A DNA stretch of 64,000 nt from Paragordius varius (taxonomy: Eukaryota; Animalia; Nematomorpha). Shown here one piece after another: positions 1 to 50,241 of this stretch (position 1 is the first letter of the stretch; each line of letters starts with the position of its first letter). The DNA lies in contig OZ176051.1 in assembly GCA_964247055.1 (NCBI GenBank), forward strand, positions 9,486,001 to 9,550,000. Reading direction: 5' to 3'. The notes beneath the pieces were generated by a model. It made no database searches. It saw nothing but the letters and a program-made list of their open reading frames with translations, and was not told where the DNA came from. Made by a program: the position numbers and the translations under genes.

Positions 1-106
1 AACGTTTTACTTATTCAAAGTTGTGGGCCCAAATAAGAATTAATTGCCTAAAATGTTTATTATTTATTTGTTAATTTTTGAAAATCATCACAAAACGAGA
101 TAAGGA

Positions 107-2638
107 TTAGATGTTTTCTCTTATCATTAGTTTCAATTGATTATTAACTAGAGCGATTTGATCACCGGCCGAAAGACGCAACTTACAAGAATTCGCTCTA
201 CATTCGATTGTATACGGAGACCGATTTTTAGCATACACAGTTATTCTTGTGGAATATTGGTTTGGTAAAAGGTGAGGCTTGATTTGGTCCCAGGTGCTTG
301 CTTTATTATTCCATCTGATATCTAATATATCGGTAAAGGGTAATATATTACACATTAGTAAAAAACGAATATCATTGACATAAGAGGTTTGTTTATAAAC
401 ATTTATTATGGGCAAAATTTTATGCGAATGGTTATAATACTCGTATTCATCAATGACTAAAAATCAAATAAAACTCATTTACGATTGTGTTGTATGCATG
501 GCGATATTTGCTTTCACTAATCAGTTAACATACTGTTGTTTGTTAAATTTTAATTTTACGCCAGTAAGTATTAACTAATGCCCAAACTACATTTTCCGAA
601 AATAAAATACATGCTGAGAATTATAAACTATCTATATAATTTTTAGGTAAATAATAAATAATTCACAATATAATAAAACTTTGTGTGACATATCGCGTAT
701 ATATTCCCTATAGTGAACAAGTAAAAATACATTTTCGTTTATTTTTATTTGTAAATTATTTTTTTAATATTAAAGGGTTGGTATCATGTTAAGTTGCATT
801 ATATCATTAATTTCTTTTAATTTTTTTAAAAAATAAGTACTTTTGGAGGCAGTTTGGCACTCCTTAGCTACCAATTTAATTTCATGTAGAGAATCCGATT
901 TTTTTAGATATATTTTGTCGTATTTGGATATTTCGTTTCTCGAACCACTTAGTATCAACTTATTATTGTCCATGTAGGTTTTAAATTTAGTCAGGTATTC
1001 ATAAGAAGGGCCAAGAATCTCAACATCTTTTATATTCCATCCAAGTGTTGAGAAACTAACTGTATTTTCACACTGATAGTATTTCCGAACACTTTTCGCT
1101 AATATATATTATATTAAATTAAGCCTAATTATTCTATAATAACGTGAGGTTTGTAGATTTTGAATTATTTTAGTAAAAAAATTTATATAACTCAGATTTT
1201 AATATACGTTAATAGAGTTTTCTGAGAGCACTAATACCCAATATGGAATTAACTTGACAAAAAGTTTGCAGCTCATGTTTTTTAATCTTTACGATTAATA
1301 GGTATGTACCGGAATATTTGTATTTATTTTGCATTGGAAAAGATTATAAATGATATATAATTGTAATAAAAAATTAATAATTAAACTTACTTAAACTTTT
1401 GGGCATATATTTAAAGTTTCCAGCTTTGTCCCACGTTCCTATAATACATAGTTTTAAGTTATTTTAGTTTATAACAAAAAGGAGAATTGCTTAAAGAATA
1501 TTGAGAGCATTAACACACTCGCCTTCGAGCATTCAGAGTGATGATGGAAAAATTATACATTTAATTATAAATATATATGAAATGTAAAAAAAATAAAGAA
1601 AACCATCAAATTTAATTATCCATCTTCTATATGCATATTGATTCACGAAAAGGACTAAAAATTCATTAGGAATCGCTGTTATATTAGCTTGAATAGAGCC
1701 GTTGGATTTTTGATATATTCTACAATGACTATAAAGGTTTAATTCACAAGTTTTGGCTAAATTAGGGTCATTGAACAAATCAGAACAATTTTCCTCAAAT
1801 ATAAATCGTCCATTGTAGCTCTTGTAATCCGTCAAAGGGTAGAAAATTTCAAAATAAAGGTTAAGTTCTTTACCATCTATGTTAATGGTCCAAAGTCCAG
1901 CATAATCACATTTACCAGGTATATTAAAGATTAATTTTGTTTTGTTTGACACTTGAAAAGGCATTTCTTTTCCATATTTGGTAGTTATTTGAATGGTAGG
2001 GGGTGTTTTTGAATTTTTAAGAGGTTGCCAAAACTCAGCTATATCGATTTCATACTTTTTGATCTTATTTGGTGATACTATGCCCCCTGTAATTACTAAC
2101 AATTGAAAAATTACTTTGCAAAATATATATGGAAAATATATATAAAATATCTATTGATATTTAAATTGGGCAAAAACCGTAACATAGTGTGTAAGGATAA
2201 CACATATATTGTTTGTTATTCCATGATATTTAGCGAAAGGCGGTTATTACAAAATATATGCATCTTTCACCTATGAATCATACGTAAAAAATTAACACTT
2301 GCACAATGTAAGAGTATTATAATATTAAATTTATTACCTTTAAGCGAAATATTTCCATGCCTTATTGTCACACCATTTTTCAAAACGGAATAAGGGCCAT
2401 CAACTAAATTCACTTTAGGCGCTATCTCTTGATCAAGAAATTGTGAATAATTAACATTAGGGTAGTAAAATGTTCCAAACGCAAAATTGACAGTTATGTT
2501 AGCTCGACCTTGATACTCATCAAGAAGTTGATAATAATATTCTTGACCAAATGAAACCAAGATGTCATCGGGATTTGGTTGCTCCTGAGCTAATATATTG
2601 TAGAACCCAAATAGGAATAAAATTGGTAGTATAATCAT
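107..2638 (-). CDS. Copy A1 of an uncharacterised secreted glycoprotein; 5 exons, predicted 479 aa, apparently intact
   Basis: Manual model: exons 2638-2338, 2086-1604, 1438-1391, 1098-841, 456-107 (301+483+48+258+350 = 1440 nt, open, ends TAA). All introns are GT-AG and phase 1, and the splice sites recur in the paralogous copies. N-terminus MIILPILFLFGFYNILA-QE is signal-peptide-like, with about nine N-x-S/T sequons and no TM segment in the spliced product. Joins track ORFs 2267-2638, 1533-2102, 770-973 and 107-415. The exon-2 donor (G|GTTTTC) is the weakest junction. Confidence 0.75.
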
Positions 2639-2680
2639 TTCAAAAAAATTATAGCTTTGATATTATAATTCTTGGAGGTC

Positions 2681-2687
2681 TTATATA
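2681..2687 (-). promoter_or_regulatory. Candidate TATA box (TATATAA) ~45 nt upstream of the A1 ATG
   Basis: TTCTATATAAGACC lies at the same position in all four copies (e.g. 25115-25121 for A3). The AT-rich background makes this weak evidence. Confidence 0.35.
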
Positions 2688-3861
2688 GAAATGCTTTAAA
2701 ATAAAAATGGGCCCTACATATTATAGGAGATAAAGCAAATATTATTGAAATTTGGTGTATAATGATATTGCAGGCTACTAAATAAATATTTTTTTATTTT
2801 CTTTGGACCAAAAGCCTAATTTTTATGTATATCGACAAAAACATTATGTAAAACTCGTGTCTAATACATTAGTTTTGTAAAATGTCAATATTTGCAATAA
2901 ACCAAAACAACTTTACCGACAGTTATTACGGTAAAAAAATAAATTAAAGTGTATTTGATCTGGCTAAGCTTACAATCTCAAATCTGGTTTAAACACGATC
3001 GCCAATTTTAAATTATATAACTCAAAATTTGTATTATAGTTAATTTATTATATATAAAAAAGGAAATAACTGTATAATTTTATGTGATTTGAAGAGCATG
3101 AAACGGAATCTTATAGAAGGTTCACGACAAAATAATTAATATTGCGAAAAGAAAATATAGAATTACACTGGTAGATTTTCATTAAATAATGCCAACAACT
3201 ATATCTTTATTTTTATTAAATACCAATAAAATGCCAAAAATTTACCTATATGTCGTATTAATTAATAGCTTTTAACAAATATTTTAAATAACCTACTTAA
3301 AAAAGTTTTTGAGCTAACCCACAATTTAGTTACAATTTGGAATGTTTTCAACTTTAAGCGATTATAATTTAAGAAATTAGGAACTTATATATATAATTCG
3401 GCATATTACCTGATGATCAACATGAGCATATATATATCAATAAAATCCCATTTTAAGTCTAAATAGAATTATACTATTTAGTCCAATTCAATACTTTTCT
3501 AACTAAAAGCATATTTTATCAAGTAAAGGCATCATCCTAACTTCCAAACGCAACATTATTTGTAGTTAAAAATTTTATTTTAGACCTGAAATTCAGCTAA
3601 CCATATTAAATCTAAAAGAATTCGTAATATAATTTGTTATAAAATAAAAAATTGTCTTTAAATGCAAAAATAATGTTGCGAAATGAAAAATTTGTCTTGC
3701 TTGAAAAATTTTATGGATAAAAATTGTGGCGGGAGCTATGTTGTGTTATGACATTGGTAATTTTTACCTAATAGTTAACCTGGTAATTATTTAATTTTGA
3801 TGATAATGATTACATATTCTTTTTTCTTAAATGTAAACTATAGAATGTGATTTTTTAAAAT

Positions 3862-4425
3862 ACTAGCGTAAATCTCGTGCTGCTACGCGGGCTATTTGAA
3901 AAAAGGGACAATATGATCCACATATGTGGATTATTTCGAAACATTATATAATAGCTATGATCTCATAGGAATTTTAAAACAGCATTCATACTAATATATT
4001 GTTTACTTGGGCGAAAAAAAAATGATTTTTGTGGACTTAATTTTAAAAAAAATGGCATTTTACGGGGGGAGCGGGTAAGAAGTTGGCCTAAATTAAAAAA
4101 GCGAGCCGACTATGTTCGGCGCAATCGAAAATAATTAAATAAAAATCATATTTGAAAGAGAATGATCCAACACGTTCTCCGGAAAATTGTCTCAAAGACA
4201 CAATTTTTGTGGACTTCTCTTTTCAAAAAAACCGTTTTTTAGACGGGGTGGGCCCGAACTGGGGGTCTAATTTAAAAAAAGGGCCAAGCTATTGTCGGTA
4301 TGATTATATTTTCGTCTGGAAAAAGATCACAAAGCCAGCATTTTCCATTTTTATAAATATATATAGATTTCGATATTGTGCCAAAAATAAACATATCTTT
4401 CTTTTATGGGATATTCATCAAAAAT
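3862..4425. repeat. Dispersed repeat upstream of each A copy (also ~22555-22860, ~41072-41640, and a diverged inverted copy ~45720-46030); left end resembles a Helentron/DINE-1-like terminus
   Basis: ACTAGCGTAAATCTCGTGCTGCTACGCGGG (short subterminal hairpin after ACTAG) followed by a GC-richer block. The family assignment rests on terminal resemblance only. Confidence 0.3.
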
Positions 4426-4569
4426 AAAATTGAATCGTCATTTTTAATGGCAAACGATATATTAATATCATCCTTTTATTTTCTCTAAAATGTTCTCTTA
4501 CGATATACCAAAATTGAGGGCCAAATAACTTAATGACAATAAAAACATTAACACATTTTTCATTCTATA

Positions 4570-6072
4570 ATATTGATGATATTGGATATCTCTTAGTTTA
4601 TGTACAAACTCTGGGGCAGTTGAGACGATTCGACCATATTGTAAGATATCTGCGCAAGTTCTTGGATTAAATGTGGTGTTATATTTTTAATCTAATCTAA
4701 ATATCGTAGCTTAAGCCTTCCAAGTTTCCTAGCCCCTTCAACTGGGCCTAAGATGGTCGCTTTTTCTAAGTTATCGGTTCTCATCACATGTCCGTAAACT
4801 CTGTGCTGAAAGGCATGAATTTTTTGATGAAGGTTAGTTTGGGTTTAATATGTACTAATATTTTGTATTGTATCTTTTGCTCCCATTCTATACCAATATA
4901 TCTATAGGTCCATAACTCAAACGCTTTTATTTTCTTGCAAATGACTTACAGCTTTAATGCATTATTGGAAAACTTATTGATCTATTACACGCTTTTTGAT
5001 GGAATTGGGAATTTTTTTGGAGAATGGATTAAAGTATGATTATTGCATTTTCTGCCATTGCAGCTCTCCTGGTACTGCTGGTTGTAGAGGTTCCATTTAT
5101 TAAATAGTAGATCTGAGGTAAATTAAGTAGTTCTGAATGTTTTGTTCTTAAAATTCACAGTAAGTCCTCTTTTGTTGGGATAAGAATTGTTGCGTCATCT
5201 GCGAAACGCAGGTTATTGATTGTCTCGCCTTCTATTATGATGCCTGCTGAGTCATTTCTATTATTTTTGTGATGTCAGTAAGTTAAATAGCGAAGGTGAT
5301 AGTGTACATCCTTGTCTGACCCTTATTTGTCTATTTATTGTTTGGTTGGGGCTTGCTGAAACTCGTATAAATGCTTTTTCATTTGAAGATTGTTGAGATT
5401 TAATAATGTGCAGGGAAAATCCGCTTCACCCATAGTTTTTAATAGACCACCCTATCAAAGCCTCGGAGTAGTTCAGGAAGGAAAATATTTTTGTTGTATA
5501 CATTTGCTTGTTCTATTATGCGTTTTATATTAGAGATGTGGTCTCGACAACTTTGAGTCGGAAACCAGCCTGTTTATTAGATATGGAGTTTCTGTACCAA
5601 TTCTCTATGCTCATTTGGATTATTTGAAAAGTATTATGTGTTTGTGAGGTATGATAATTCTGCAATAATCGCAATCTTTTCCTTGACATTTTCATGTATA
5701 TTGGTATGAAGATTGATTTAGTCCAGTCTTTTAGCCATCCACAATTTCTTTTGGCCTAACTTGGTTATTATGTCAGTTTGTTTTAGGACTTCTTTCGAAA
5801 TGCGTCCATCCTGGGGTTATGTTCTTAACGATTAGCAATCCTGTATTCAATTCTTGTTTGAGTTATGCTGGGTTCTGTTAAATGTGGAATAATTTGTGCG
5901 GTATTTGTTTTAAAAATTTGCAATGTATTCCTTGTTACATCTTGTTGTTGGTTAGGTGATTCCTTCAATGTGATTTATTTGTGAATTCTATGGGTTTATA
6001 AGGTATTCATATAGGGAGATGCTTCTTTAGACAATTCGTTTCAAATTTGTGGCAAGTATTTAATGCCTGTAT
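4570..6072 (-). mobile_element. Decayed RTE-clade non-LTR retrotransposon, RT region
   Basis: Minus strand gives VRQGCTLSPSLFN (~5320-5283), INNLRFADDATIL (~5220-5180), FLNYSEAL (equivalent to FxDYxKAFD) and YRYIG; many stops and frameshifts. Confidence 0.8.
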
Positions 6073-6521
6073 TTTTGATGTCACATAGCATATATTATTG
6101 GTACCATGCAATCTCGCCATTTTTGCGTTTATTCAAAAAGACAGCCTATTTTAAAGGGGTTAAAATTTTATATAAATAATAATATTTCATATTTAAAAAT
6201 TTATATAAGATTTTTTTGTAATGAACATCTAGTTTTTAACCAAAAAATATATTTAGCATAAAGTGGGCCTATTTTGCCATTTTTCGATCAAAAGTATAAT
6301 TATTTAAAAAGATGTGCCCAAAACCTAAAGGATTATTAAAGTCCTGATTATATCAGATTATATATTTCATCAGGATGTTTTTAGACCGCCCGATTCACTC
6401 TGTGCATATAAAATAAATATACTGTAAGCATGGAATAATTAATATAAAATATAATGTCTTTCAATATTTATTTATTTTAAAGAACCATTTATATCAACTT
6501 AAAGTATTTTTAGAGATCTGA

Positions 6522-8310
6522 TTATCTGAAAAGTAGTATCGTTTTCTTCAGGTTCTGTTTCATAATTGTTGTTATTGTTTTTGAATCAAGAATAGTTGAT
6601 CCCATAACCATTTTGGTATAGCGACCGGTTGACATAGCTAATATGTATATTGAGCACATTTCAAGTGTCTGCGTATCCAAAAAGTTCATCGGGATAGTCA
6701 GGTTTTCATTGTAATTTGAGTATAGGTAACATTTTCGTTTTGACTTTAACAATCTTTCGATGATCTTGAAGAGATATAAGCCAAAATTTAATGTACATTT
6801 GTTTACCCGACCATTCGTCGTTAAAATCAAATTATAATCATGCACTTTCAACATCGAAGAACCTTCGGGCGTTGCGTTAGAGCTCATGCCTTAAAAAATG
6901 TAATTAAATTAATATTTTTGACATAAAATGATAAAATAGATCGTTAACATTATACTTATTGTCAATTCTCCTGCAACAGTGCTTTTGGTTTCGTCTAACA
7001 GGGATTCTAATTTCAGTAAATAGTCACAATATCCGACATTTGATAGTTCTTTTTCTACCGATCTCAAATATAGCATACCTTGACCAACACACCGTATTTT
7101 TTCAAGATGGGGCATACTTATATCTATTGGCGAGTCGTTTAATTGTTGGATAAATAATTGAAAAATCAAAACATCTGCAGTCAATGATATTGAACTTATA
7201 TCTATGTATATCAATAGCACATATATATATATATATATAGATATGTTAAGAAATTACATCGAAAACTTTAAGAACCCAAGTGGTGTCTGATTAATATAGT
7301 GAAATAATCAAAAGAAATAATTATCGGTCTCAATTTTATAATTAATCTCGCAGGTTCTTTGAAATGAAGGACAGGAGCTTTGGATCAAAATATTTGCACA
7401 GACCAAAATTATCAGTTATGTTTATATACTACAAAATTTTTGGCACAAAAAAAATTTTAAACATAATGTAACACATAAACACTATATTACCTTTTCATAT
7501 TTTGTATGATGAGTACCTATATGGATTCTTTGTCCCTGCGCTTTAAACTTATATAGTACAATTATTATTAGGGAAATTATTTTCGCTAAATTAGACCAAA
7601 ATGTTTTTCTAAATTTATATATGTTTAGAATATAGAACCAACACTCGTGACAAACAGCTGATATTAATTTAATAAATTTCTTAACCTGGAATTTTTATCG
7701 AATAATTCCATGTCGGATGATATGACAAAATCAGTAAGGGCAATGTTCCATATTTTTTTAATGGATCCAAGCATTTATATACGATTATTAAAGCTTCAAA
7801 TGACGGTTTTTTCATATCATTTGTGTCTGGATCAAAATATAAAACAAGTTCTGGATATAGGATATGGACATTGATACATTCAACAATGTGAACATTCAAA
7901 CTACATTCCTGTCCATCATATCCCAGATATAATTTTAATTGTGTAAATAATTTTGATTTTGCCAAAACTTGTTTAATAAGAGGGAGCTTTTCCGCAAGTA
8001 AAGCAGAATCCATGATATTTTGATCTTCGTGTAAGCTAAGTTGATTTTCGGAACATGATTGTAAATCCAAATTTTGTATTGGTCTAGTTTCTATCAAATC
8101 GCATAAATTCTAAAATACCTGGAGTAGTGAATTTTGTAAATTTTTCTTCCAATGTCTCTTTAGATTTGATTTCATTTTGAATAAGAGGGGTGATTTTTTC
8201 GTTAACCCTTGTTACAGTCCATTTACTCAATAAAATAAAGGCTAACCATGCCACAATGACTAAAATAAAAGAAATTATAAAAATGAGAAGTATAAAAGTA
8301 GTATCTATAT
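6522..8310 (-). CDS. Synaptotagmin-like gene (N-terminal TM plus two divergent C2-like domains), copy B1; possibly impaired
   Basis: TM FILLIFIISFILVIVAWLAFILL (~8300-8230); C2A-like QLKLYLGYDGQECSLNVHIVEC (ORF 7681-8097); C2B-like start GELTIS and end YNENLTIPMN..IYILAMSTG..MGSTIL. Putative introns 8118-8091 and 6955-6890. The start codon and middle exons are unresolved; canonical Ca-binding Asp residues are not evident. Confidence 0.5.
7221..7239. repeat. (AT)n microsatellite; paralog is longer (50211-50239); another at 48529-48549
   Basis: Seen directly. Confidence 0.9.
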
Positions 8311-8902
8311 TAAATAAATAAGTTGAAACATGTTTAGAACGTAAACGTTTATTTTAAATTTTTTAAATATTTCAACCTATTATTGTTAAAATTATCACAA
8401 AAACTATTACTTCTTTTAAAATTTTCCCATTAATGCTTTTTAGAGTTAAGTAATGCCAAAAATATATTTTGCACGATAAAAATTCCTTTGCGCTTAATCT
8501 AAGTTGAGAAACTCTTCTTTTACCAAGCCATTCTAATATTCTTTAAAATTGGAGGTTTTAAAAAATTTTATAAATATTTTTTTGTAAAGTTTTGAACCGA
8601 ATAAGTGTATAAAACGCAATAGTAATTTATGGATTATTTTGATATTGAGGTCGTGTAATCAGTCCTATCAAACTTTGAATAAAGATCTAAAATCTATTCC
8701 ACATTGATTTATATAAATTTATATTTAATAAGAATACCACACCTTCAGGATTAAAACACCACAAGGTTCAGAGCCCTTTTCAATAAAGCATGTCTACCAA
8801 GGCTCATCACTCAGCCCTTTATTGTTTTAATAATTTGTATAAACGAGGTAGCCAAGGTCGTTAATGTAAGGTCAGGTTGGCACTTAATGTTATGCACATG
8901 AC

Positions 8903-9195
8903 TGTTATGCAAATCTGAAAGTTATACTTTATTTTTATAATATTTTTCTGTGTTATATGCAAATGTGAAATACATACTTTGGTTATATATCATAACTTTC
9001 ACCGTTATTTGAATTGTATTATTTTTTATATTTTTTGTGTTATATGTAAATATAGAACCTTTGTTACTTGAAATTTTATTGATATAATGCAAATCATGGA
9101 CAGTTAAAATTGCTATATATACACCTTAAAAAACCAAATAAATAGTTCAGTTCATTTCACATTTCTTTTATTATCTCTTATCTTAAAAGATAAAA
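8903..9195 (+). repeat. 5' LTR (293 bp)
   Basis: No difference from 13203-13495 on base-by-base reading; begins TGTTAT and ends ATAAAA. Confidence 0.95.
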
Positions 9196-9196
9196 T

Positions 9197-9204
9197 TGGT
9201 GGCA
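9197..9204 (+). promoter_or_regulatory. Primer-binding site TGGTGGCA
   Basis: One nt after the 5' LTR; complementary to a tRNA 3' end UGCCACCA. This is the end of metazoan tRNA-Leu(AAG/UAG), but only 8 nt match. Confidence 0.7.
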
Positions 9205-9261
9205 ATTCGAGTACCGAACTAAGCTAGTGCTAGTGGAGGTCTTACTGATACCCAATCGAAC

Positions 9262-12200
9262 ATGACAACGCCAATCAATCTCGCTAACCTATGCATCGAA
9301 AAATATAATGATAATATTAAGTTTGAGGAATACGTTGAGTATATGACAAATGTTATGGAGGCAAAAGATATCCCTGTAACAGAACAAGCCCTCAAAACAA
9401 CCTTGCTTGCGTATGGAGGTCTAATGGTGGTACGCAAAATCAACCAACGACTCTATCCGAAAAAGATAAAAGATGCAGAATGGACCGAGATAATGGCAAC
9501 GGGTTTAAAGGTATTCAATCCCACAAAGTCGAAATTCCAAAGCAGATTTGAGTTTTTTCGACTTGTGCGGAACAACACCGAATCGTTTACCCAATTTCTA
9601 GAACGGGTAAAAATCGCAGCCGAAGAGGCAAAATTTAAGGATTCAATAGAGGAACGGATTCGGGATGCCTTCGTCATTGGGTTACGGCAACCACAATTGG
9701 AAATTGACATACATTCAAGGTATCCCGATGCCGAGATCAACGGACAACCCGTGCCTCTAGAAACGATAGTGGATCTCGCACTAGCACACGAGGCTGCCAG
9801 GGCTGGCCTTCATAACAATAATGATAATACCAATTATAATAATGGTAATAATTTAAATCGATTACAACACACCAATAATAATAACAAGGCCATGCGTTCA
9901 CGACAGCCAACAGCAAAACCCCTAACACATTCGTGCAATCGTTGTGGTAATAGCCATGGACCAAACAAATGTCCTGCCTGGAACCGCAATTGCAATAAAT
10001 GCGGAAAACCTCATCACTTCGCAAAAATGTGTAGATCAAAAAACACTGCCAAAAATTTGTTCAACCGCCAGATCCATAGAAAAGCAATGCCAACCTCACC
10101 ATGGACCGTAAAAATAATGATAAACAACACAGAACAAACGTTTATCTATGATACTGGAGCTGACATCAGTGTTATCAGCTTTGACACCTGGAAACAAGTT
10201 GGCAAGCCAAATATTAGACCCATACCGCCAGTAAAAGCCTACAATAATAGCATAGTACCTCTACTGGGCGTAACAACAGTCACAGTGCAAATCAATGGGC
10301 AAAACTTGGGGAACGCAGAATGTTGTGTATTGAAAGAAAAAATGTCAAAGGCACCGCTCATTTGTGGCTTGGATTGGATCACGAGATTTAACATCGACAT
10401 TCCTAAAGTACGAATTAACTTTCTTAAACTTGATAAAATTATTGAAAATTTCCCTAATCTATTTAAAGAGGAATTAGGTTGTTACATTGAGCCAGTTACA
10501 ATTCATATAGCACCCAATGCCTCCCCAAAAGTTTGGCCTTGCCGCCGAGTACCGTTTCCCCTAAGAGCAAAAGTTGAAAATGAATTACTAAGATTACAAA
10601 AGTTAGACATTCTGGAGCCGATAGATCCCAACCTTACACCTCTGACATGGGCCACGCCCACCGTTAATGTGCTCAAAGCGAATGGAGAGGTAAGAATTTG
10701 CAGCGATTTTAGAGTTACCATCAACAAGTGGCTCACTGAGGACTCTCATATCATTCCAACGTTTGATGATTTAGTGAGTAAGATTGGCGAAGGCCAAGTT
10801 TTCACTAAGATTGACTTGAAAGATGCCTATCTACAAATGCCCATAACCAAAGAATCACAAGATCTCTTGACAATTGCGACTCACAAAGGATTTTTTCGCT
10901 ACAAAAGGATGCCTTTCGGACTGTCAACAGCACCAATAATTTTCCAACGAGTCATGGACCAGGTTATAAAAGATTGTCCCGGCACTTGTGCATATTTAGA
11001 TGATGTTTTAGTAACTGGCAAATCAGAACAGGAACATTTAATAAATCTTAATAATGTTTTAAATCGGTTAGAATTAGCAGGTTTTAGATTAAGAAAAGAT
11101 AAAATAAAAATTGGTGAACCTTCAGTAAGTTATCTGGGATTTGAAATAAGTAATAAAGGTATAAGTCCTTGCAAGAATAAAGTAAAAGCAATCAATGATT
11201 TTAAAAAACCTGTGGATAAAAAATCTTTAAGAAGTTTTCTAGGATTTTTGACGTTTCATGAAAGATTTATACCCAAGCTTCAATTGATTGTAAGTGACTT
11301 ACATAGTTTAACAAGTAAGAACGTTAGATGGAACTGGTCGGAAAAACATGAGAATTGTTGGAAAGCCGCTAAGGAATTATTAAGTGAACAAGTATTTTTA
11401 ACACCATACAATCCGGATAGAAAGTTAGTAATTGAAACCGATGCCTCAGATATAGGGTTTGGATGTATTCTAAGTCATGTTGTAAATGGTGAAAGGAAAC
11501 CCATTGCCTATGGTTCAAGAAAATGTAGTACCGCAGAATCGAACTACTCCACGATAGAAAAGGAATTAAAGGCTATTGTTTTTGCATTAGAAAAGTTCCA
11601 CAACTTCATTTATGGTAGAAAGTTTGAAATTTTGACAGACCACTTACCACTTGTTAGGTTAATAAATAGGGATAGAAATTTGAAAGAAATACAAAATGCG
11701 AAAGTTTTAAGATGGGTGAACCGTTTGAATGATTATGACTTTGAACTTAGTTATCAGGCGGGTCCCAAAAATAGAGCTGATTACTTATCAAGATGTCCCA
11801 GTGATGATAATGTCGACACAATCGATAGAGATTACATGGTAACTAGATATCTTAGGTTTCTTAATTGTCATAACGTTCAGTTAAGTCGCGATGAAATTCG
11901 GAGAGAAACGGTTAAAGATAAAATTTTGCAGAAAGTAATTAAGGCGATTCATAACCAAGATTGGAGTGATGTTGAGTTGGCTGGGTTTACGAATCGGAAG
12001 GGAGAGATTTCGTACCAATACGGATTGGTCAGTTTAAACGATCGAATTATCATTCCAGAAAGCTTACAGTCAAACGTGGTCAACTACTTACACAGCGGGC
12101 ACAATAACGTAGAAACAATGAAAGCAATGGCAAGGTTTACTTGTTTTTGGCCGAAATTAGAGAACGATTTGGTAAGAAGATACAGTGAGTGTAGTGCATG

Positions 12201-13191
12201 TCAGATAAACAAGCCAAGCCTAGTTGAAAATCCGACTTATCATTGGGATCCAAATGCTGCGATATGGGAACGGTTACACATCGATATAGCGGGACCAGTT
12301 GACGGGTATTATTGGTTGTTACTGATTGATAGCTCATCCAAATGGGCGGAAGGGTTCATGTTAAAAAGGGTTAATTCGGTAAACATATTGCATAAACTCG
12401 AGGAAACCTTTGCCAGGTTTGGGTTTCCGAGGACGGTTATTAGTGATAATGCTTCTTATTTTAGTAATTCGTACTTCACATCCACTCTAACAAACTTGGG
12501 TATTAAACACGTAAGGGTAACCCCCTATCATCCTAAAAGTAATGGGATGGTAGAAAGGTTAGTGGGGACCCTCAAGGGCAAGTATAGAAAAATCAAAAAT
12601 GATAATATTTCACCACAAGAAGCCTTCAATACTACTCTATGGTCGTATCGTAATTCAATACATGCGACTACAAAAGAAACCCCGTTTCAACTACTCTTCA
12701 AACGAGTATCTCAAACACCCCTCACCTGGATCAACACAAAAGCAACAATCTTAGACGCACCCCGTCCACGCCGTGAATTCTCAATAAACCAACCCGTAAT
12801 GATGAGAAACGAACAAAATGTTGGATGGCGAGCCGGCGATGTTGTTGATAGAACGGGTCTCCTTTCGTACAGTGTGTGGGATCAGGTAAACCAGAAGATT
12901 GTCAGAAAGCATGCAGATCAGTTGAAACACGTAGACCTACCGGCCAACTCAACCGCACCGGTTACTCCAAACAATAGTAATGATAGTAATAAAGACAATA
13001 ACAATAATAATAATGATAGTAGTATTGATAATAATAACAATAGTAATGACAATAATGATGATAAAATAAATGATAATAATAATGAAAGTAGCAATGATAA
13101 CATTAATAATAATAATGACAATATCAATGCAAATCCGCACGAGCGTCGTTACCCCGAGAGAATTCGGCGGAAGCCGGTCCGGTTCTCTTAA
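9262..13191 (+). CDS. Gag-Pol polyprotein, 1309 aa, single frame
   Basis: Twin knuckles CNRCGNSHGPNKC / CNKCGKPHHFAKMC (Mag-type); protease YDTGADISVI; RT KIDLKDAY and YLDD; RNase H TDASD, EKEL, TDHLPL; integrase HHCC, HIDIAGP, SDNAS, NGMVER; Asn-rich tail ending RRYPERIRRKPVRF. Confidence 0.97.
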   Translation: MTTPINLANLCIEKYNDNIKFEEYVEYMTNVMEAKDIPVTEQALKTTLLAYGGLMVVRKINQRLYPKKIKDAEWTEIMATGLKVFNPTKSKFQSRFEFFRLVRNNTESFTQFLERVKIAAEEAKFKDSIEERIRDAFVIGLRQPQLEIDIHSRYPDAEINGQPVPLETIVDLALAHEAARAGLHNNNDNTNYNNGNNLNRLQHTNNNNKAMRSRQPTAKPLTHSCNRCGNSHGPNKCPAWNRNCNKCGKPHHFAKMCRSKNTAKNLFNRQIHRKAMPTSPWTVKIMINNTEQTFIYDTGADISVISFDTWKQVGKPNIRPIPPVKAYNNSIVPLLGVTTVTVQINGQNLGNAECCVLKEKMSKAPLICGLDWITRFNIDIPKVRINFLKLDKIIENFPNLFKEELGCYIEPVTIHIAPNASPKVWPCRRVPFPLRAKVENELLRLQKLDILEPIDPNLTPLTWATPTVNVLKANGEVRICSDFRVTINKWLTEDSHIIPTFDDLVSKIGEGQVFTKIDLKDAYLQMPITKESQDLLTIATHKGFFRYKRMPFGLSTAPIIFQRVMDQVIKDCPGTCAYLDDVLVTGKSEQEHLINLNNVLNRLELAGFRLRKDKIKIGEPSVSYLGFEISNKGISPCKNKVKAINDFKKPVDKKSLRSFLGFLTFHERFIPKLQLIVSDLHSLTSKNVRWNWSEKHENCWKAAKELLSEQVFLTPYNPDRKLVIETDASDIGFGCILSHVVNGERKPIAYGSRKCSTAESNYSTIEKELKAIVFALEKFHNFIYGRKFEILTDHLPLVRLINRDRNLKEIQNAKVLRWVNRLNDYDFELSYQAGPKNRADYLSRCPSDDNVDTIDRDYMVTRYLRFLNCHNVQLSRDEIRRETVKDKILQKVIKAIHNQDWSDVELAGFTNRKGEISYQYGLVSLNDRIIIPESLQSNVVNYLHSGHNNVETMKAMARFTCFWPKLENDLVRRYSECSACQINKPSLVENPTYHWDPNAAIWERLHIDIAGPVDGYYWLLLIDSSSKWAEGFMLKRVNSVNILHKLEETFARFGFPRTVISDNASYFSNSYFTSTLTNLGIKHVRVTPYHPKSNGMVERLVGTLKGKYRKIKNDNISPQEAFNTTLWSYRNSIHATTKETPFQLLFKRVSQTPLTWINTKATILDAPRPRREFSINQPVMMRNEQNVGWRAGDVVDRTGLLSYSVWDQVNQKIVRKHADQLKHVDLPANSTAPVTPNNSNDSNKDNNNNNNDSSIDNNNNSNDNNDDKINDNNNESSNDNINNNNDNINANPHERRYPERIRRKPVRFS

Positions 13192-13202
13192 GGGGGAAGC
13201 GA
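13190..13202 (+). promoter_or_regulatory. Polypurine tract AAGGGGGAAGCGA
   Basis: Overlaps the pol stop codon and abuts the 3' LTR. Confidence 0.85.
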
Positions 13203-13495
13203 TGTTATGCAAATCTGAAAGTTATACTTTATTTTTATAATATTTTTCTGTGTTATATGCAAATGTGAAATACATACTTTGGTTATATATCATAACTTTC
13301 ACCGTTATTTGAATTGTATTATTTTTTATATTTTTTGTGTTATATGTAAATATAGAACCTTTGTTACTTGAAATTTTATTGATATAATGCAAATCATGGA
13401 CAGTTAAAATTGCTATATATACACCTTAAAAAACCAAATAAATAGTTCAGTTCATTTCACATTTCTTTTATTATCTCTTATCTTAAAAGATAAAA
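13203..13495 (+). repeat. 3' LTR (293 bp)
   Basis: Follows the PPT and is bounded by the TSD ATGAC. Confidence 0.95.
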
Positions 13496-14260
13496 ATGAC
13501 ATAATCATTTCTGATTCATTGGCTGAGTTAAAGCGAACGGTAAACAGATGGGTTATTATATAGAATCAATATCGTCTGAAAGTAAACAAAGCAAAACCTG
13601 AATTTATTACTTTTGGGGGTCCACAACATGAAATGGAAGTTGATGATAATTGGGGTCTGAAAGGTAAAGAAAGGTGCAAATATTTGGGGGCAATGTTAAG
13701 TTCATATGGATCGTTGACCGATGATAATAATTTAAGTAAAGTGCAGTTGGGTAAATTGGAAGAAAATTTCAAACGTGTTATGTGATCGAAATATTGATGT
13801 TAGAGTAGGTATACAGTTCAGTTGTTCAAGCCACAATGATGTATAATTCAAAGACCTGGGGGGTTGAAAAATCCGAAGAAAGACATTTTGACGTCACTAA
13901 AATGAAAATGCTTAGAATGATGTGTGTGGTAACGAGAAAGGACAGAATTAGGATTAAATTTATTCGTGAGAGCACAGATGTTAAACCAATAGTGGAAAAA
14001 TGTCAAAAAATAGGCTACGTTGGTTTGGGCGCATTGAAAGGGGAGATTTTAATTATATTGCAAAAATAAAAGATAGTCATATAGTTGTAGGAAAACAAGG
14101 ATGTGCGCGGCCTAAAACAAAATAGATAGACACAAAGAGAGCTAGCAGAATACGAGCAGTTCTATGGCGAGACCGGATACATGACCGTCACGAGTAAAAA
14201 CATGTAATGTAATTATTAAATAAATATTTACTCACCGTAGAAACATTGTATATATTCGAC

Positions 14261-14350
14261 CAGTCGCGGAACTATAAATTTTGCCCCCCCCCCCCCTCAC
14301 TCCAAAAAATCGTTTGCAGTTATCTTTTCACATGGCGCATCATTTAGATT
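14261..14350 (+). repeat. Short dispersed MITE-like repeat (also 52711-52800 and, inverted and diverged, 34530-34640)
   Basis: CAGTCGCGGAACTATAAATT-poly(C)-AAAATCGTTTGCAGTTATCTTTTCACATGGCGCATCA is shared by three loci; the CAGT(G/C)GC start resembles hAT-derived MITE ends. Confidence 0.5.
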
Positions 14351-17199
14351 CGTAAAGAAATATTATATTTAAAAATGATAATATTTACATGACTTGGCAT
14401 CCTGAGTCTAAATTGCGCTCCCGGGATTTTTATATATAATAGTTAATACCCACCCGCCCTCCCTAACCACCGTCAATACCTTAATATTAATGTTCATTTT
14501 GAAGGTTTAAAATAATTAAATATATATTAAAATGTATTAATTGGAAAACATGTTATAACATTTCGTTTTCCGTGAGCAAATTTTCTAATTTATCTTTTTA
14601 TCCATTTGATCCGCCATCCATGTTCTTTTTAAATGCCCAGATTTAATGTTTTTTGTAATAGGTTTTTGAAAAGCAAAGATTTTCTGAATAAGGATTTCTT
14701 TTATATGACCTGGGGGACGATGTAAATTACACGATATCAGAATTTTCTTTATTTCTCTATATTTATATAATACCCATATCGGAATTCTTTGAAATCAAAC
14801 AAGTTAAACCACGTTCCACATTAGTATGACTCAAACTATGCATATCATCTATACTTTTTTTGCTAATCGCTATCGTTTTCTCATTTGTGCTGGAGCCATC
14901 ATGAGGGCTAGGTTCAATAGTATGACTCGAGTTATCCAAATTATCTACACCATTACTGATATCAACTGTTTTTTGTTTCTCGTGTGAGCTAGCATCAAAG
15001 AATACATTTGTCAAAACGGGTTTTAAGAAATCTGTCATTATTTTAATTTTTGATGCTTATTTTTCCTTCGCTCATATTCGTTTTTACTCTTCACCCTAGT
15101 TTGGCACTAAGATACAAAAAAACATTAAGAATTAAATATTTTGTAAGAAATTTTTTTACAACTGGCGATTATTGTGAAAACATGATGCGAATCCTTAAAA
15201 TCTTTTAGTTCAGGGGTCGGCAACCTTTTCTTTTGTGCGGCGCCCAAGTAAATACCATAATAAACCATGATGCTGTAGCTAATATGGGATAATTATATCC
15301 TATTTTACTATGAAGACTTATATCCTAATTCATGTGGACAGCTTGTTTAGTGAAGCTGTCTCTATTTCGCTCGTCTGTATGCTCACATATTCGTTTTTCA
15401 TATAAACACATTGTCAACATATGCGCCAATACGGGCCTACCTAGGAATAGCAGCGGGAAAAGTTTTTAAATACAAACTTAAAAGTTTTTCCTTCGGAATT
15501 CGGATAAATAAATTTTGACAGCTGTTTAATCAGAATAATAAAATATTTTTTATGGTAATATGGCTTTTTGATATTATAATAAAAATGCTACGAACCTGTC
15601 CCAAAAAAGTGGAACTAGAATCGGGCTCCAATCTAATAACGGAGCATGAATCGGTTCCTAAAAGAAACCAGGTTCCGATTCGAAGGCTTAATAAATATTT
15701 CTAAATGTAATTGCATGGAATATGAATTTATATTTGAGAATGGCCCGCTAAAAAAATTGATCTCTGTTTTATTGTGTGGTGAAAGTTTATCGAAAATTTT
15801 ATATTTTATAACAAAAGATAATTTAAAATAACATGCATCAAAGGATAAAAACATTATACAAATGATGCATATCAATGTATACCTGCTATTAAAAGTTGGC
15901 CAATTCACTTCACAGTAAAGTATGTGAAATAACAATCTATAAAATTTAATGAATATCATTCACAATGTGTGCATTGAAACATTTTTAAAATTATTGTTAT
16001 TTCTCATATGAATTGGTACACATTAATGTGAGTTGGCCTGCATTAAAATGCATATTGCATAATCAAAATAAATTAGATTATTAGAGAACATTGTTATAAT
16101 GAATGTTTATCTTTTTCCCCTCCTTTATTTATTCACTATTAGATTGCCAGAAATTAATAATGGATCATCACTAAAATTTAATGGATAGTAAAAAATGCAT
16201 TTTTTGCTCTTTCTTCCTTTGACTCAATAATATTAAAATTTACATGAACCCATTTCCTCACAAAAATTAAATATGTAAATTATCTTTCACTACATCAAAA
16301 AACAAAATATATTTTTACGCTATATGAATATAATATTTTAAATGAGATTTTATTTGTAATTATTTTAATTTAACAGAGGCAAATTACATCTGTCAAAATT
16401 ATGCGAATTCTCATGAAACTATAATTATTAATAACAAAATTAGGACTTGAAAATACATGAGCTTCACTTGGTGTCAATCTATACTCATTTATTTATATTT
16501 AAACTATTTTCATTTTTTAAAGTGTTAACTGAAGATAATTTAAAGTTTTTTATTAATTATAAATTTATAATTACTTATTGAGATAGTAAAAAAATGCATT
16601 TTTTCGCTTTTTCTTCCTTTCATTAAATAATAATTGTCTTTATTATTTGCCAGTATACTTACAAACAGGCAATTACTTACATATCTGTACATGAAAAAAA
16701 GTATTAAATTTTAAGCACCCCCCTCGCAACATAGAAAGAGGGCCCAAATTTAATATAAATAAAAAGGGCCCCTGTTTTGCCTTGGGCCACCCCGCACTGC
16801 TCCCCCTAGCCCGTCGTTTCGCCACTGATTATTACTTTACCGCTATTAAGATCTTGCTATTAACTCACATACTTCCTTTGTGTAGTTAAATTATTTATTT
16901 GGTTTATAAAATTTTATTTATTTTTATCCGCACATTTATTTACTATATTTAATTTAAAGTTAGCCAGGGGTTGTCAATTTTATTTTAATGTGTATCAAAA
17001 TTGCTATAAACAGGGAAGTTCAAACACAAATATCTTCGCGGCTTCTTTGATAATATTTGGTTAAGTTTTTATTAGACCAATTTTGGATTGATAGACCTTC
17101 TATGTTATCGTAAATTTTTGATTGAAATCCAATTATTTATTTTTTTAACATTTATTAGAGCACTTTTGCATACACCCTGCTTTAAAACTTAATTGTAAA

Positions 17200-17750: not shown

Positions 17751-18804
17751 TAAAAATAATTTATGAATAGCTAAAAGCTTTGAGATAATGGACATCGAAA
17801 TGATAAATGCGATTAAAATTCTGGAAAAAAAATAAAATTTTGCAATTTGCGGATAGCATGACAATAGAGGGAAATTCAACTATATTTTATTGTTTATATT
17901 ATTATAAGCCTAATCCAAAACTTCAAAACTTGAATATAGAACGAGATGGGTATTAAAATTTTGTAACCGAACAAATTGGTTCGAACCCAACAAAATCGAT
18001 GCTATTTAAATAAATTTTCTAATCGAACAACTTCCCAAACAATTAAATGAAATAGCCTAGTACTAATTAATACTAAAATAAATTAGGGATTGTATTCACA
18101 AAGGCTTACATCAGTGGTACTCAACAACAAAATATAAAGGGGCGAAAAAAAATATATTGTCGCAATGGTTAACACACCATGTAATACCGATAAAATTTCA
18201 TAGCTTTTTTGACACATTTGCAGATATTTATACTTAAAATAAACATTTAAAAATATAATAAATTTAAGGAGATTCCCTAGGGTCCCGGTTGGAGTACCTC
18301 TGCTAAAATGATTTTAATTATCCTAACCTAATTTAAAAAAATCATATTTACAAAAGGGCATTGTACGGCAGAACCGTGAAAATGAAACCGATAATACTCT
18401 CGCGTCAATAAATATTTCAGCTCAAAACATAAAATAGATATAAAATTTTAGGGCAAATCTAGAAAACACCTAATAATATATTCTAAAAGTTAAATATTTT
18501 ATTGACTGTGTTATTAAATTATTTTTGGAATATAAAAATTTTGAATTTATTTGATAAATCCAAAAACTTTCGCGGGCCGCAAATTGTTGCAGAAGACCGC
18601 GTGTAGGAGAGTGCTGGAAGATAAATGGACAATAAAAATCGAGATATTAGTGTTGGTTTGGTATGAGGCTTTAATTACCTCTTTAAATCAACGTTTTACT
18701 TATTCAAAGTTGTGGGCCCAAATAAGAATTAATTGCCTAAAATGTTTATTATTTATTTGTGAATATAGTTAATTTTTGTAAATCATCACAAAACGAGATA
18801 AGTA

Positions 18805-21308
18805 TTAGATGTTTTTTCTTATCATTAGTTTCAATTGATTATTAACAAGAGCGATTTGATCACCGGCCGAAAGAAGCAACTTTATACAAGAATTTGCTGT
18901 GCATTTGATCGTGTACGGAGACCGATATTTAGCATACACAGTTATTCTTGTGGAATATTGGTTTGGTAACAGGTGAGGCTTGATTTGGTCCCAGGTGCTT
19001 GCCTCACTATTCCATCCGATATCTAATATATCGATAAAGGGTAATATTACACATTAGTAAAAAACGCATATCATTGACATAAGAGGTTTGTTTATATATT
19101 ACGGGCAAATTATGCGAATGGTTATAATACTTGTATTCATCAATGACTAAAAATCTAATAAAACTCATTTACGATTGTGTGAGTATTTGCATAGTTGTTT
19201 TCACTAATCAGCTAACATATTGTTGTTTGTTAAATTTTAATTTTACGCCAGTAAGTATTAACTAATGCCCAAACTACATTTTCCGAAAATAAAATACATG
19301 CTGAGAATTATAAATAATCTATATAATGTTTTATCTAAATAATAAATAATTTAACAATATAATAAAACTTTGTGTGACATATCGCGTATATATATTCCCT
19401 ATAGTGAACATCAAGTAAAAATATATTTTCGTTTATTTTTATTTGTAAATTATTTTTTTTAATATTAAAGGGTTGGTATCATGTTAAGTTGCATTATATC
19501 ATTAATTTCTTTTATTTTTTTAAAAAAATAAGTACTTTTGGAAGCGGTTTGGCACTCTTGAGCTACCAATTTGATTTCATGTAGAGAATCCGATTTTTTA
19601 GATATATTTTGTCGTATTTGGATATAGCTTTTCTCGAACCACTTAGTATCAATTTATTATTGTCCATGTAAGTTTTAAATTTAGTCAGGTATTCATAAGA
19701 AGGGCCAAGAATCTCAACATCTTTTGAATTCCATTCAAGTGTTGAGAAACTAACTGTATTTTCACACTGATAGTATTTCTGAACACTTTCCGCTATAATA
19801 TATATTATATTAAATTAAGCCTAATTATTTAATAATAACGAGAGGTTATGTAGATTTTTAATTTTTATTAGCAAAAAAATTTATTTAATAAAAAAAACTC
19901 AGCGTTTAATAGACGTTAATAGAGTTTTATGAGAGCACTAATACACAATTGGAATTAACTTGAAAAAAACAATTTTTTTGCAATAGAAAAGATGGGTTAC
20001 AAATATGAATAATATATAATTGTATTAGAAAAAAATTAATAATTAAACTTACTTAAACTTTTAGGCATATATTTAAAGTTTCCAGCTTTGTCCCACGTTC
20101 CTGGATAATAATATATAGTTTAAAGTTATTTTTCTAGTTTATAACAAAAAGGACAATTTCTTAAAGATTGAAAACATTAACACACTCGCCTACCAGGATT
20201 CAGAGTGATGATGGAAAAATTATACATTTAATTATAAATATATATGAAATGTAAAAATAAATAATGAAAACCATCAAATTTAATTATCCATCTTCTATAT
20301 GTATATTGATTCACGAAAAGGACTAAAAACTCATCAGGAATCGCTGTTATATTAGCTTGAATAGAGCCGTTGGATATTTGATAAATTCTACCAGGACTAT
20401 AAAGGTTTAATTCACAAGTTTTGGCTAAATTTGGGTCATTGAACAAATCAGAACAATTTTCCTCAAATATAAATCGTCCATTGGCTCTTGTAATCCGTCA
20501 AAGGGTAGAAAATTTCAAAATAAAGGTTAAGTTCTTTACCTTCTATGTTAATGGTCCAAAGTCCAGCATAATCACATTTACCAGGTATATTAAATATTAA
20601 TTTTGTTTTATTTGACACTTGAAAAGGCATTTCTTTTCCATATTTGGTAGTTATTTGAATGGTAGGGGGTGTTTTTGAATTTTTAAGAGGTTGCCAAAAC
20701 TGAGCTATATCGATTTCATACTTTTTGATCATATTTGGTGATACTATGCCCCCTGTAGTTACTATAAATCGAAACATTACATTGCTATTAGATATAGAAA
20801 ATATATAAAACAAAATTATTGATATTGATAAATTAGGCAAAAAACGCAACATAGTGTATAAGGATAACACATAATTGTTATATTGTTATTTAATGATATT
20901 TAGCGAAAAGCGGGAATCACAAAATATATGTATCTTTAGCCTATGAATCATACGTAAAAAATTAACACTTGCACAATGTAAGAGTATTATAATATTAAAT
21001 TTATTACCTTGAAGAGAAATATTTCCATGCCTTATTGTCACACCATTTTTCAAAACGGAATAAGGGCCATCAACTAAATTCAATTTAGGCGCTATCTCCT
21101 GATCAAGAAATTGTGAATAATTAACATTAGGGTAGTAAAATGTTCCAAACGCAAAATTGACAGTTATGTTAGCTCGACCTTGATACGCATCAAGAAGTTG
21201 ATTATAATATTCTTAACCAAATGAAACCCAAATATCATTGGGATTTGGTTGCTCCTGAGCTAATGTACTGTAGAACCCAAATAGGAAGAAAATTGGTAGA
21301 AAAATCAT
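18805..21308 (-). pseudogene. Copy A2 of the secreted-protein gene (disrupted)
   Basis: Co-linear with A1. TAA replaces Gln32 (21215-21213); 2-nt deletion in exon 2 (~20483); 1-nt loss in an exon-4 homopolymer (~19575-19590); 2-nt deletion in exon 5 (~19045). Confidence 0.8.
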
Positions 21309-22999
21309 TTCAAAAAATTTAATAGCTTTGATATAATTATTGGAGGTCTTATATAGAAATGCTTTAAAATAAAAATGGGCCCTACACTATTAAAGAGATA
21401 AAGCAAATATTATTAAAATTTGGCAATGTATAATGATATTGCAGGCTACAAAATAAATATTTTTAAAAATATTTTGGACCAAAGCCTAATTTTTATGTAT
21501 TTCGACAAAAACATTATGTAAAACCCGTGCCTAATACGTTAGTTTTGTAAAATGTCAATATTTGCATTAAACCAAAACAACTTAACCGACAGTTATTACT
21601 GTAAAAACATAAATTTAAATAATGTATTTGATCTGGCTAAGTTTACAATCTTAAATCTGGTTTAAACACGATCGCCAATTTTAAATTATATAACTCAAAG
21701 TTTGTATTATAGTTAATTTATTATATATAAAAAAGGAATTAACTGTATAATTTTAAGTGATTTTAAGAGCATAAAACGGAATCATTTAGAAGGTTCACGA
21801 CAAAATAATTAATTTTGCGAAAAGAAAATATAGGGATGCACTGGTAGTTTTTCATTAAAACAACTATATCTTTATTTTTATGAAATACCAATGAAATACC
21901 CAAAATTTACCTATATGTCGTATAAATTAATAGCTTTTAACAAATATTTTAAATTACCTACTTAAAAAAGTTTTTAAGCCAACCCACAATTTAGTTACAA
22001 TTTGGAATGTTTTCAACTTTAAGCGATTATAATTTAAGAAATTAGGAACTTATATATATAATTCGGCATATTACCTGATGATCAACATGAGCATATATAA
22101 ATCAATGAAAATCCCATTTTAAGTCTAAATAGAATTATACCATTTAGTCCAATTCAACACTTTTCCAACTAAACGCACATTTTATCAAGTAAAGACAGCA
22201 TCGTAACTTCTAAACGTAACATTATTTGTAGTTAAAAATTTTATTAAAGACCTGAAATTCAGCTAACCATATAAAATCTAAAAGAATTCGTAATTTAATT
22301 TATATAATAAAAAAATTGTCTTTAAATGCAAAAATAATGTTGCGAAATGAAAATTTTGTCTTGCTTGAAAAATTTTATGGATAAAAATTGTGGCGGGAGC
22401 TTGATAAAATGTTGCGATTGTTATGACAATGTTGATTTTTACCTAATAGTTAACCTGGTAATTATTTAATTTTTATGATAATGATTACATATTCATTTTC
22501 TTAGTCTAATGCAGCTTAATTAATGTAAACTATAGAATGTGATTTTTTAAAATACTAGTGTAAATCTCGTGCTGCTACGCGGGCTATTTGAAAAAAGGGA
22601 CAATAAAATGATTCACATATGTGGATTATTTCGAAACATTATTTAATAGCTATGATCTCATAGGAATTTTAAAACAGTGCATTCATACTAATATATTGTT
22701 TACTTGGGCGAAAAATAAAAAATGATTTTTGTGGACTTAATTTTTTTCAAAAAAATGGCATTTTACGGGGGGAGGGGTAAAAAGAGGGCCTAAATTAAAA
22801 AAGCCAGCCGACTATGTTCGGCGCAATCGAAAATAAGTAACAAAAATCATATTTGAAAGAGAATGATACACAGTCTTTCCGAACCAGAAGATTTTATGAA
22901 ATATTTATCTACGATGAATGTTATTTTTTTATAACAATAATTTTACAAGTTAAAAAACATTTTTTGTTAAATTTTATTTTTATCACTCGCGACACCATA

Positions 23000-23250
23000 A
23001 ATTTACTGGGCAAAAAATTTAGATTGTTGGAGAAATTATTTGATTTTGTAAAAATATGTTTAATTATTGGAAACACTAAAATATTATTGGGCAATATAAT
23101 TCGATTGTTAATAAAATTATTTCATTGTTGAAAATATATGTTTGAATGTAAACACTAAAAGGTTATTGGGCATTCTAGAAAATATATGTTTAATTGTTAA
23201 AAATACTAAAGAATTATTTGGCAAATTATTTTGATTAATAAAAAAAAATT
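23000..23250. repeat. Degenerate minisatellite (about 3 units of ATATGTTTAATT..ACACTAAAA..TTATTGGGCA); inverted copy ~45310-45560
   Basis: The recurrent motif is visible directly. Confidence 0.5.
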
Positions 23251-23399
23251 TGATTGTTGTTTTATAGTGTTTAATAGTGTAAATTTATGTGTAAGAGGCG
23301 CATCACAAACGGTCGTATTAATACATAAGTAACACAAAAATAAAATTAATCATATAATAAAATATTTCACCTCGATTAAAAGGTAGTCTAATATGTGAT

Positions 23400-23693
23400 C
23401 ACTATGATTAACCTAATTCAGAAGTATCTAACAAGGCCGCATGTCCCTTCCAAAATATTTATGGAGTTAATTTTAATTACATTTTAAGAGATCTAAGCAT
23501 AAGCGATTTTCTTAAAAAAATCTTCTCAAAAATTTGGCATGATCTAGCTAAAATTGTTAAAATAAACAGTGATTTGTGCACTCTTATGTTTTAAATTCAA
23601 TAAACTTTTTATTAATGCCCATATATTTTGTTCGGCCCGTCAAATCTTTGATGCAAGCATGCCGTCCGCGAAGCTATTTGTATTTCACCCCTG
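23400..23693 (-). mobile_element. hAT/Charlie-like MITE remnant (inverted copy from 44865)
   Basis: Terminus CAGGGGTGAAATAC with downstream GGGCCG; related CAGGGGTCGGCAACCT termini occur at ~15211 and ~53626. The opposite TIR and TSD were not found. Confidence 0.35.
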
Positions 23694-23769
23694 CCCTAGA
23701 TATACTACATAGTTGCAATCAAATTATATAATTTGCTTTTAATAGTAATTACTACAGGTATTATTTAGT

Positions 23770-32725: not shown

Positions 32726-32897
32726 TTATCCAGGTATCCAGAAAGTGTGACAGGCATGGTTCTAACCGCCACTGTACGCACAGGACGACCCTTACTGCCT
32801 TCCTGCGCTTTTACGCGCTGGGCAGGGGGACGCCACTTCATTGCTGGGTGCTTCTAAGGGTATATGGAGTATGTAGTACAACAAACAAATTAAAAGC

Positions 32898-50207: not shown

Positions 50208-50241
<34 letters not shown>

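Follow-up and report, generated by a model that had tools for sequence, protein, structure and literature searches.

A probable five-exon gene for a secreted glycoprotein and its three disabled copies in a segmentally duplicated region of the Paragordius varius genome

A 64,000-nucleotide (nt) stretch of the genome of the horsehair worm Paragordius varius (assembly GCA_964247055.1, contig OZ176051.1, positions 9,486,001 to 9,550,000 of the forward strand; hereafter the window, in whose coordinates all positions are given) contains four copies, A to D, of a sequence that in copy A can be read as a five-exon gene for a putative secreted glycoprotein. The window has a G+C content of 25-37% and is clearly eukaryotic. 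On the minus strand, the copy A exons at 2638-2338, 2086-1604, 1438-1391, 1098-841 and 456-107 join into a single open 1440-nt frame of 479 codons (301 + 483 + 48 + 258 + 350 nt), as established by direct reading and by the location of landmarks. Each internal exon is preceded by AG, and the four donors are, in order, GTAATA, GTTTTC, GTAAGT and GTACTT. This spliced frame had been proposed in an initial annotation, and it was reproduced exactly, with the exon lengths and AG/GT boundaries in agreement. All four introns are in phase 1, and exons 2, 3 and 4 are hence symmetric (1-1); the codons split at the four junctions specify Gly, Gly, Thr and Ile.

Exon 1 (2338-2638) opens with the ATG and a signal-peptide-like sequence, and is followed by the largest exon, exon 2 (1604-2086; 161 codons), which harbors both the part of the protein rich in predicted beta strands and the segment CDYAGLWTINIDG. 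Exon 3 (1391-1438) is a mini-exon with a single open frame, bounded by AG and GTAAGT. Exon 4 (841-1098) ends at the donor GTACTT, and exon 5 (107-456) includes the TAA stop codon (109-107) and encodes no hydrophobic tail. Direct reading of the flanks revealed a TATATAA box at 2681-2687 on the minus strand, 43 nt 5' of the ATG, and two AATAAA polyadenylation signals at 56-68 on the same strand, 39-51 nt 3' of the stop codon. Both the TATA box and the AATAAA signals are kept in every one of the four copies.

The copies were located by tblastn with four open reading frame (ORF) pieces and then aligned over the entire gene together with at least 370 nt upstream and at least 100 nt downstream; exon boundaries were mapped through the alignment, and the exons were translated as they stand. 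By this exon-by-exon translation, copy A (107-2638, minus strand) is the only open copy of the four, and copies B, C and D carry stop codons and/or frameshifts in their exons. Copy B (18805-21308, minus strand), a pseudogene under the five-exon model, has an in-frame stop at codon 32 in exon 1 and gaps of 2 nt in exon 2, 1 nt in exon 4 and 2 nt in exon 5; it is also the most diverged copy, differing from copy A by 2.7-5.8% in exons and by 4-12% in introns. Copy C (25161-27693, plus strand), inverted relative to B, is disabled in exon 2 and otherwise open: two gaps of 1 nt and 2 nt, 30 nt apart, together bring the frame back, with a stop codon remaining in the shifted stretch. Copy D (37345-39864, minus strand) is frameshifted by the 2-nt gap in exon 2 that it has in common with B and by a gap of 1 nt close to where exon 5 begins. 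The initial annotation had described a gene amplified four times; the count of four copies stands, whereas the number of functional genes in the window comes down to one. As judged from their reading frames, B, C and D are young pseudogenes and should be annotated as such. The indels of these three copies in exons 1 and 2 cluster within 45 nt of exon 2 (1816-1858 in the coordinates of copy A), for which either a hot spot of slippage or mere chance (roughly p = 0.1) could account.

Several lines of evidence indicate that the spliced frame encodes a protein. Stop codons make up 7.2% of the codons across the six frames of the window, and at this frequency some 0.002 open runs as long as the 205 codons at 1533-2150 would be expected in a window, and practically none of 479 codons; thus, the spliced 479-codon frame cannot be due to chance. 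Only six open runs of at least 160 codons were present in the window, three of them belonging to this family, two to retroelements and one lying at 32491-33009. Across the copies, 38 indel events fell within 1092 nt of intron and 10 within 1440 nt of exon (binomial p = 5e-7). The indel-free zones match the exons, with indels directly abutting the acceptors of exons 3, 4 and 5. Substitution-bearing columns were likewise more frequent in introns than in exons (9.4% versus 5.9%; Fisher p = 0.0014). The ratio of nonsynonymous to synonymous differences (pN/pS), calculated by the Nei-Gojobori method, was 0.41-0.56 in all six copy pairs, close pairs included, and 0.32-0.54 when exons 3-5 were considered alone. 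As the synonymous distance between A and B (pS = 0.084) lies within the range of intron divergence, these ratios indicate that the frame has been under moderate purifying selection. Even the mini-exon conforms to this pattern: the four copies differ here by a sole substitution, which the model frame makes synonymous, whereas indels occur directly before its AG and about 20 nt past its donor. The initial annotation had also pointed to conserved splice sites and to indels concentrated in introns. The latter claim is borne out by the counts given above, and the splice dinucleotides are indeed intact in all four copies, although the introns and flanks are themselves 88-99% identical and the kept GT and AG therefore carry little weight alone. 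These comparisons argue that copy A is a genuine protein-coding gene, the splicing of which we infer from the sequence.

The predicted product contains nine N-x-S/T sequons (three, four, none, none and two in exons 1 to 5, respectively) and nine Cys residues (none, four, none, two and three), in accordance with the approximately nine sequons and scattered Cys noted earlier. Its only strongly hydrophobic segment is the N-terminus, with a hydropathy value (KD19) of 1.66 at residues 1-19 and hydrophobic residues at 2-13, so that the earlier description of this end as signal-like holds. The putative cleavage context is ..N-I-L-A|Q (ILA|QEQ) in copy A and ..S-T-L-A|Q (STLA|QEQ) in copies B, C and D, and by a heuristic assessment the hydrophobic core and the small residues at -3 and -1 agree with the classical pattern of secreted proteins. 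A hydropathy scan of the product revealed neither a second hydrophobic segment nor a hydrophobic tail, and no internal repeats were found between exons. With a hydrophobic N-terminus and no other hydrophobic segment, the product should be soluble and secreted, with approximately 460 residues left after removal of the signal peptide.

Structural modeling provided a lead for the N-terminal half. Single-sequence AlphaFold2 (AF2) models were poor for both exon 2 (mean predicted local distance difference test, pLDDT, 47.6) and exon 5 (pLDDT 57.2). In the exon 2 model, stacked beta strands occupy residues 3-97 (strands at 8-97, with a pLDDT of about 60), and the known structures closest to it are sandwiches of the Ig-like, filamin, PapD or CBM kind. 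The best Foldseek match of this model had an E value of 0.096 (filamin repeats, about 0.1), and VIA gave Z scores of 4.2-5.5, with a root-mean-square deviation of 2.4-4.2 A over 61-89 residues; these Z scores lie below the noise level given for the tool, for which unmatched models typically reach a best Z of 7-8. The Foldseek and VIA matches were accordingly taken as noise. An Ig-like beta-sandwich in exon 2 is thus a lead from a predicted model and not a result.

The search for relatives was made with individual exon sequences. Pfam searches with exons 1, 2, 4 and 5 (the 15-residue exon 3 was left out) identified no family, and exons 1, 2 and 5 had no match at E <= 1; a CPSase match with an E value of 0.13 was regarded as noise. 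A phmmer search of the PDB with the same four exons yielded nothing below E = 0.1, and neither search assigned the sequence to the Ig, fn3, filamin, cadherin or PapD profiles. With exon 2, a word search was blank, although its length filter hides full-length kin and the ORFs of this genome evidently lie outside the collection; the ESM Atlas was blank for exons 2 and 5, and no match to exon 2 was found among viral or metagenome contigs. A single 16-residue pattern match between exon 5 and a viral contig (L001) was rejected as chance. An exhaustive HMMER search with exon 2 against 1.84 billion representative proteins returned one match, the bacterial protein P0001, in which the motif P-x-K-x-x-Y-x-G-x-W-T-I-x-G-x-E at residues 52-75 of exon 2 is matched. 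P0001 carries repeats of the Listeria-Bacteroides type, and homology was rejected, since no similarity extends beyond the motif and the E value of 6e-8 stems from a single segment, about 20 residues long, that is matched nine times over by the tandem repeats; taken alone, each repeat scored 22-27 bits against exon 2, with pairwise E values of 5e-4 to 8e-3. Only about 20 of the approximately 70 residues of a Listeria-Bacteroides (Flg_new-like) repeat align, and exon 2 has no Pfam match to it. The absence of a recognised family, as first remarked from the sequence, was therefore upheld by the Pfam, PDB, word, Atlas and HMMER searches, and the family is, as far as these searches reach, without detectable relatives and restricted to this lineage.

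The arrangement of the copies provides insight into the history of the cluster. Self-blastn showed that they sit in units of approximately 4.4 kb within larger colinear duplications, in which 1-8902 corresponds to 37239-51919 and 13496-16608 to 51915-55609. The duplicated units differ in extent and share no common termini, and are therefore products of segmental duplication, not transposition. By self-blastn and repeat finding, copies B and C were found to lie in a head-to-head inverted duplication (17862-28646), with arms of about 4.2 kb at approximately 17862-22019 and 24445-28646 that are 91-93% identical (95-96% in local stretches) and are separated by a spacer of about 2.4 kb. Part of this spacer (22866-24445) is repeated in inverted orientation at 44147-45691. 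Copy D is a mosaic of C-like and A-like parts, diverging from C by 0-1.7% from exon 1 to exon 4 and from A by 0-1.4% from intron 4 to the 3' flank; this mosaic divergence points to gene conversion or unequal crossing-over between copies. The birth-and-death pattern suggested by the initial annotation is consequently stronger than was claimed, with three of the four copies being pseudogenes and copies being recombinant mosaics. A second set of duplicated same-strand ORFs (138, 103-114 and 121-126 codons) occurs at 6522-8254 and 49500-51250, both on the minus strand; it resembles another multi-exon gene, has no Pfam match and shares the segmental duplication with copy A.

One run search yielded six sequencing runs that contain the copy A stretch, all of them DNA-like. 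In the DNA runs the stretch is represented by about ten layers of short variant contigs, which fits roughly five to ten gene copies per genome and not a high-copy repeat. Within 60-2700 of the window, in a comparison of runs X1 and X4 with X3 and X6, many contigs have loose ends that terminate in GATC, and X1 and X4 reached word depths in the thousands; these runs may represent Hi-C-type libraries of the assembly project. The copy A stretch was present under three organism labels (A, B and C) at 92-100% identity.

On the whole of this evidence we lean towards the interpretation that copy A is a genuine intact gene for a secreted glycoprotein of a lineage-restricted family, and that its cluster has entered the 'death' phase of birth-and-death evolution, a reading that we hold to be moderately probable. 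Under this interpretation, the five-exon gene would be served by its own TATA box and polyadenylation signals, and its product would pass through the secretory pathway, receive N-glycans at as many as nine sites and leave the cell. The family would have spread locally through segmental duplication and one inversion, its copies would have been homogenised patchwise by gene conversion or unequal crossing-over, and B, C and D would recently have been disabled by stop codons and frameshifts. Secretion, glycosylation and any extracellular role are properties that we infer from the predicted protein. Our best guess is that it acts as a binding or structural protein at the worm surface or in secretions directed towards the host or the environment, with a beta-sandwich in its N-terminal half; by analogy, a role as a host- or environment-facing effector is a guess.

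A number of observations weigh against this interpretation. With regard to the gene model, GTTTTC makes a poor donor for exon 2, exon 3 is possibly a cassette exon, and an alternative acceptor of exon 5 near 331 is also in frame. With regard to coding capacity, variable sites are distributed over the three codon positions as 30/19/36, a weak bias (p = 0.07), and the single intact copy among four could mean that the family is disappearing. The signal peptide was called by eye and from hydropathy only, and the exhaustive search for relatives covered exon 2, while the length filter of the word search conceals full-length kin. Finally, in the four DNA-like runs that were compared with the gene, the introns are evenly covered and no joints occur, and the runs that are labelled as RNA and carry the same species label contain next to none of the words of copy A; there are only a few such RNA runs, of small size and probably made from a single life stage.

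It is possible, if somewhat unlikely, that the gene is real and the model partly wrong, in that another exon 2 donor is used, exon 3 is skipped, exon 5 starts from about 331, or a 55-nt intron within exon 2 (1873-1819) is removed in some copies. Because GTTTTC is weak, no part of the model is less secure than the 3' boundary of exon 2. The frame continues open to 1533, and better donors than GTTTTC occur at 1647 (GTGAAT) and 1874 (GTAAAG). Use of the donor TTC|GTGAAT at 1647 (phase 0) would end the protein at the TAA closing exon 3, giving about 263 residues; however, it would leave the constrained exons 4-5 untranslated, and the pN/pS of 0.32-0.54 in the model frame implies that these exons are coding and reached in phase 1. 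Skipping of the symmetric exon 3 would preserve the frame. Entry into exon 5 near 331 would avoid the gaps that B and D carry in this exon, but where exon 5 begins, B and C have indels of 3 and 6 nt that keep the frame, a sign that this part is coding. Removal of the 55 nt (GTAAAG...AG) would return B and D to frame (55 + 2 = 57) but would break the frames of A and C, and the fit was for this reason judged a coincidence; in the AF2 model, moreover, these 55 nt seem to encode a genuine beta-hairpin. For a rescue of the frameshifted copies by micro-introns of 22-27 nt, no fitting GT..AG pair was found.

We consider it unlikely that the whole family is dead or dying, with copy A being the last copy not yet hit, nothing being expressed and the constraint being a relic of an ancestor that functioned. 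Such a history would be in keeping with the disabling of three copies out of four, with the run search, in which no RNA run turned out to contain the gene, with the RNA-labelled runs of the species, which are nearly devoid of the gene's words, and with the weak codon-position bias. However, pN/pS is 0.4-0.56 even between close pairs, copy A keeps 479 open codons together with its TATA box, splice sites and polyadenylation signals, and the small number, small size and probably single life stage of the RNA runs reduce the weight of their silence.

The inverted pair B/C might also be thought to give rise to a long hairpin RNA and to small RNAs that regulate the intact copy, as the two arms are head-to-head and highly similar along about 4.2 kb and both copies are pseudogenes. 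We judge this quite improbable: the promoters of B and C face outward from the spacer, so that a transcript running through both arms is not what would be expected by default, and inverted duplications readily form without serving any function. Very improbable, too, is the more ambitious scenario in which copy A is the founder of a family of secreted proteins, new in structure and specific to horsehair worms, and acts on the insect host, through manipulation or immune evasion, with small RNAs from the B/C hairpin tuning its dosage.

The window also harbors retroelements. A complete Ty3/gypsy long terminal repeat (LTR) retrotransposon lies at 8903-13498 on the plus strand, with 296-nt LTRs (8903-9198 and 13203-13498) that are 100% identical and one open frame (9262-13191) encoding a 1309-residue Gag-protease-reverse transcriptase (RT)-RNase H-integrase protein with an Asn/Asp-rich tail. 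The element is missing from the paralogous duplicate, where the counterparts of its flanks (6074-8902 and 13496-14464) abut at 51915-51919, which indicates that the insertion postdates the segmental duplication. It is very young, and about 4-5 bp of target sequence were apparently duplicated on insertion. An open 278-codon frame at 33687-34523 on the minus strand matches the reverse-transcriptase domain RVT_1 (E = 6e-32) and is probably a fragment of a non-LTR retrotransposon.

It is highly improbable that the gene itself is a mobile element or its cargo, such as an env-like glycoprotein belonging to the nearby Ty3/gypsy element, with the copies arising by transposition, because, although the unit of about 4.4 kb is multi-copy, the DNA runs contain many short variant contigs, the intact Ty3/gypsy is only 6.3 kb away and a non-LTR RT fragment is present (33687-34412), the copies lie inside larger colinear segmental duplications of differing extents without common termini, and the gene stands outside the LTRs on the opposite strand, has four introns and its own TATA box and polyadenylation signals, encodes neither a membrane anchor nor the C-terminal hydrophobic segment of a retroelement Env, and matches no transposon or viral family in the searches described.

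The dealings of horsehair worms with their insect hosts and their adult aquatic life are poorly understood, and secreted proteins without relatives are obvious candidates for mediating the interaction of these animals with insect hosts and with water. The locus described here provides one intact candidate and three dated pseudogenes, constituting a small natural record of gene turnover. It would also be missed by ORF-based or homology-based gene finding.

The comparison with known systems can be made at three levels. With respect to fold, the stacked strands of the low-confidence exon 2 model resemble, with scores below noise level, the sandwiches of Ig-like, filamin, PapD and cadherin domains; in contrast to members of the Ig superfamily, exon 2 does not display the conserved Cys pair and Trp core pattern. 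With respect to gene structure, copy A shares with the micro-exon genes (MEGs) of flatworms a predicted secreted product, symmetric phase-1 exons and one small (48-nt) symmetric exon. However, this is a single small exon amid exons of 258-483 nt, copy A lacks the extended series of symmetric micro-exons (about 36 nt or less) expected of MEGs, and its product is not a short disordered acidic peptide. The third comparison is with the lineage-specific, tandemly amplified clusters of secreted or surface glycoproteins found in parasites, from which the locus differs in that its product has no membrane anchor, only one intact copy is present in the window and no sequence link to any such family could be established. 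With these clusters it shares a signal peptide (here predicted), many sequons and phase-1 introns, as well as local amplification, patchwise exchange between copies, many pseudogenes and the lack of outside relatives. While the protein family is new, the locus is of an ordinary kind: a lineage-specific cluster of secreted-protein genes.

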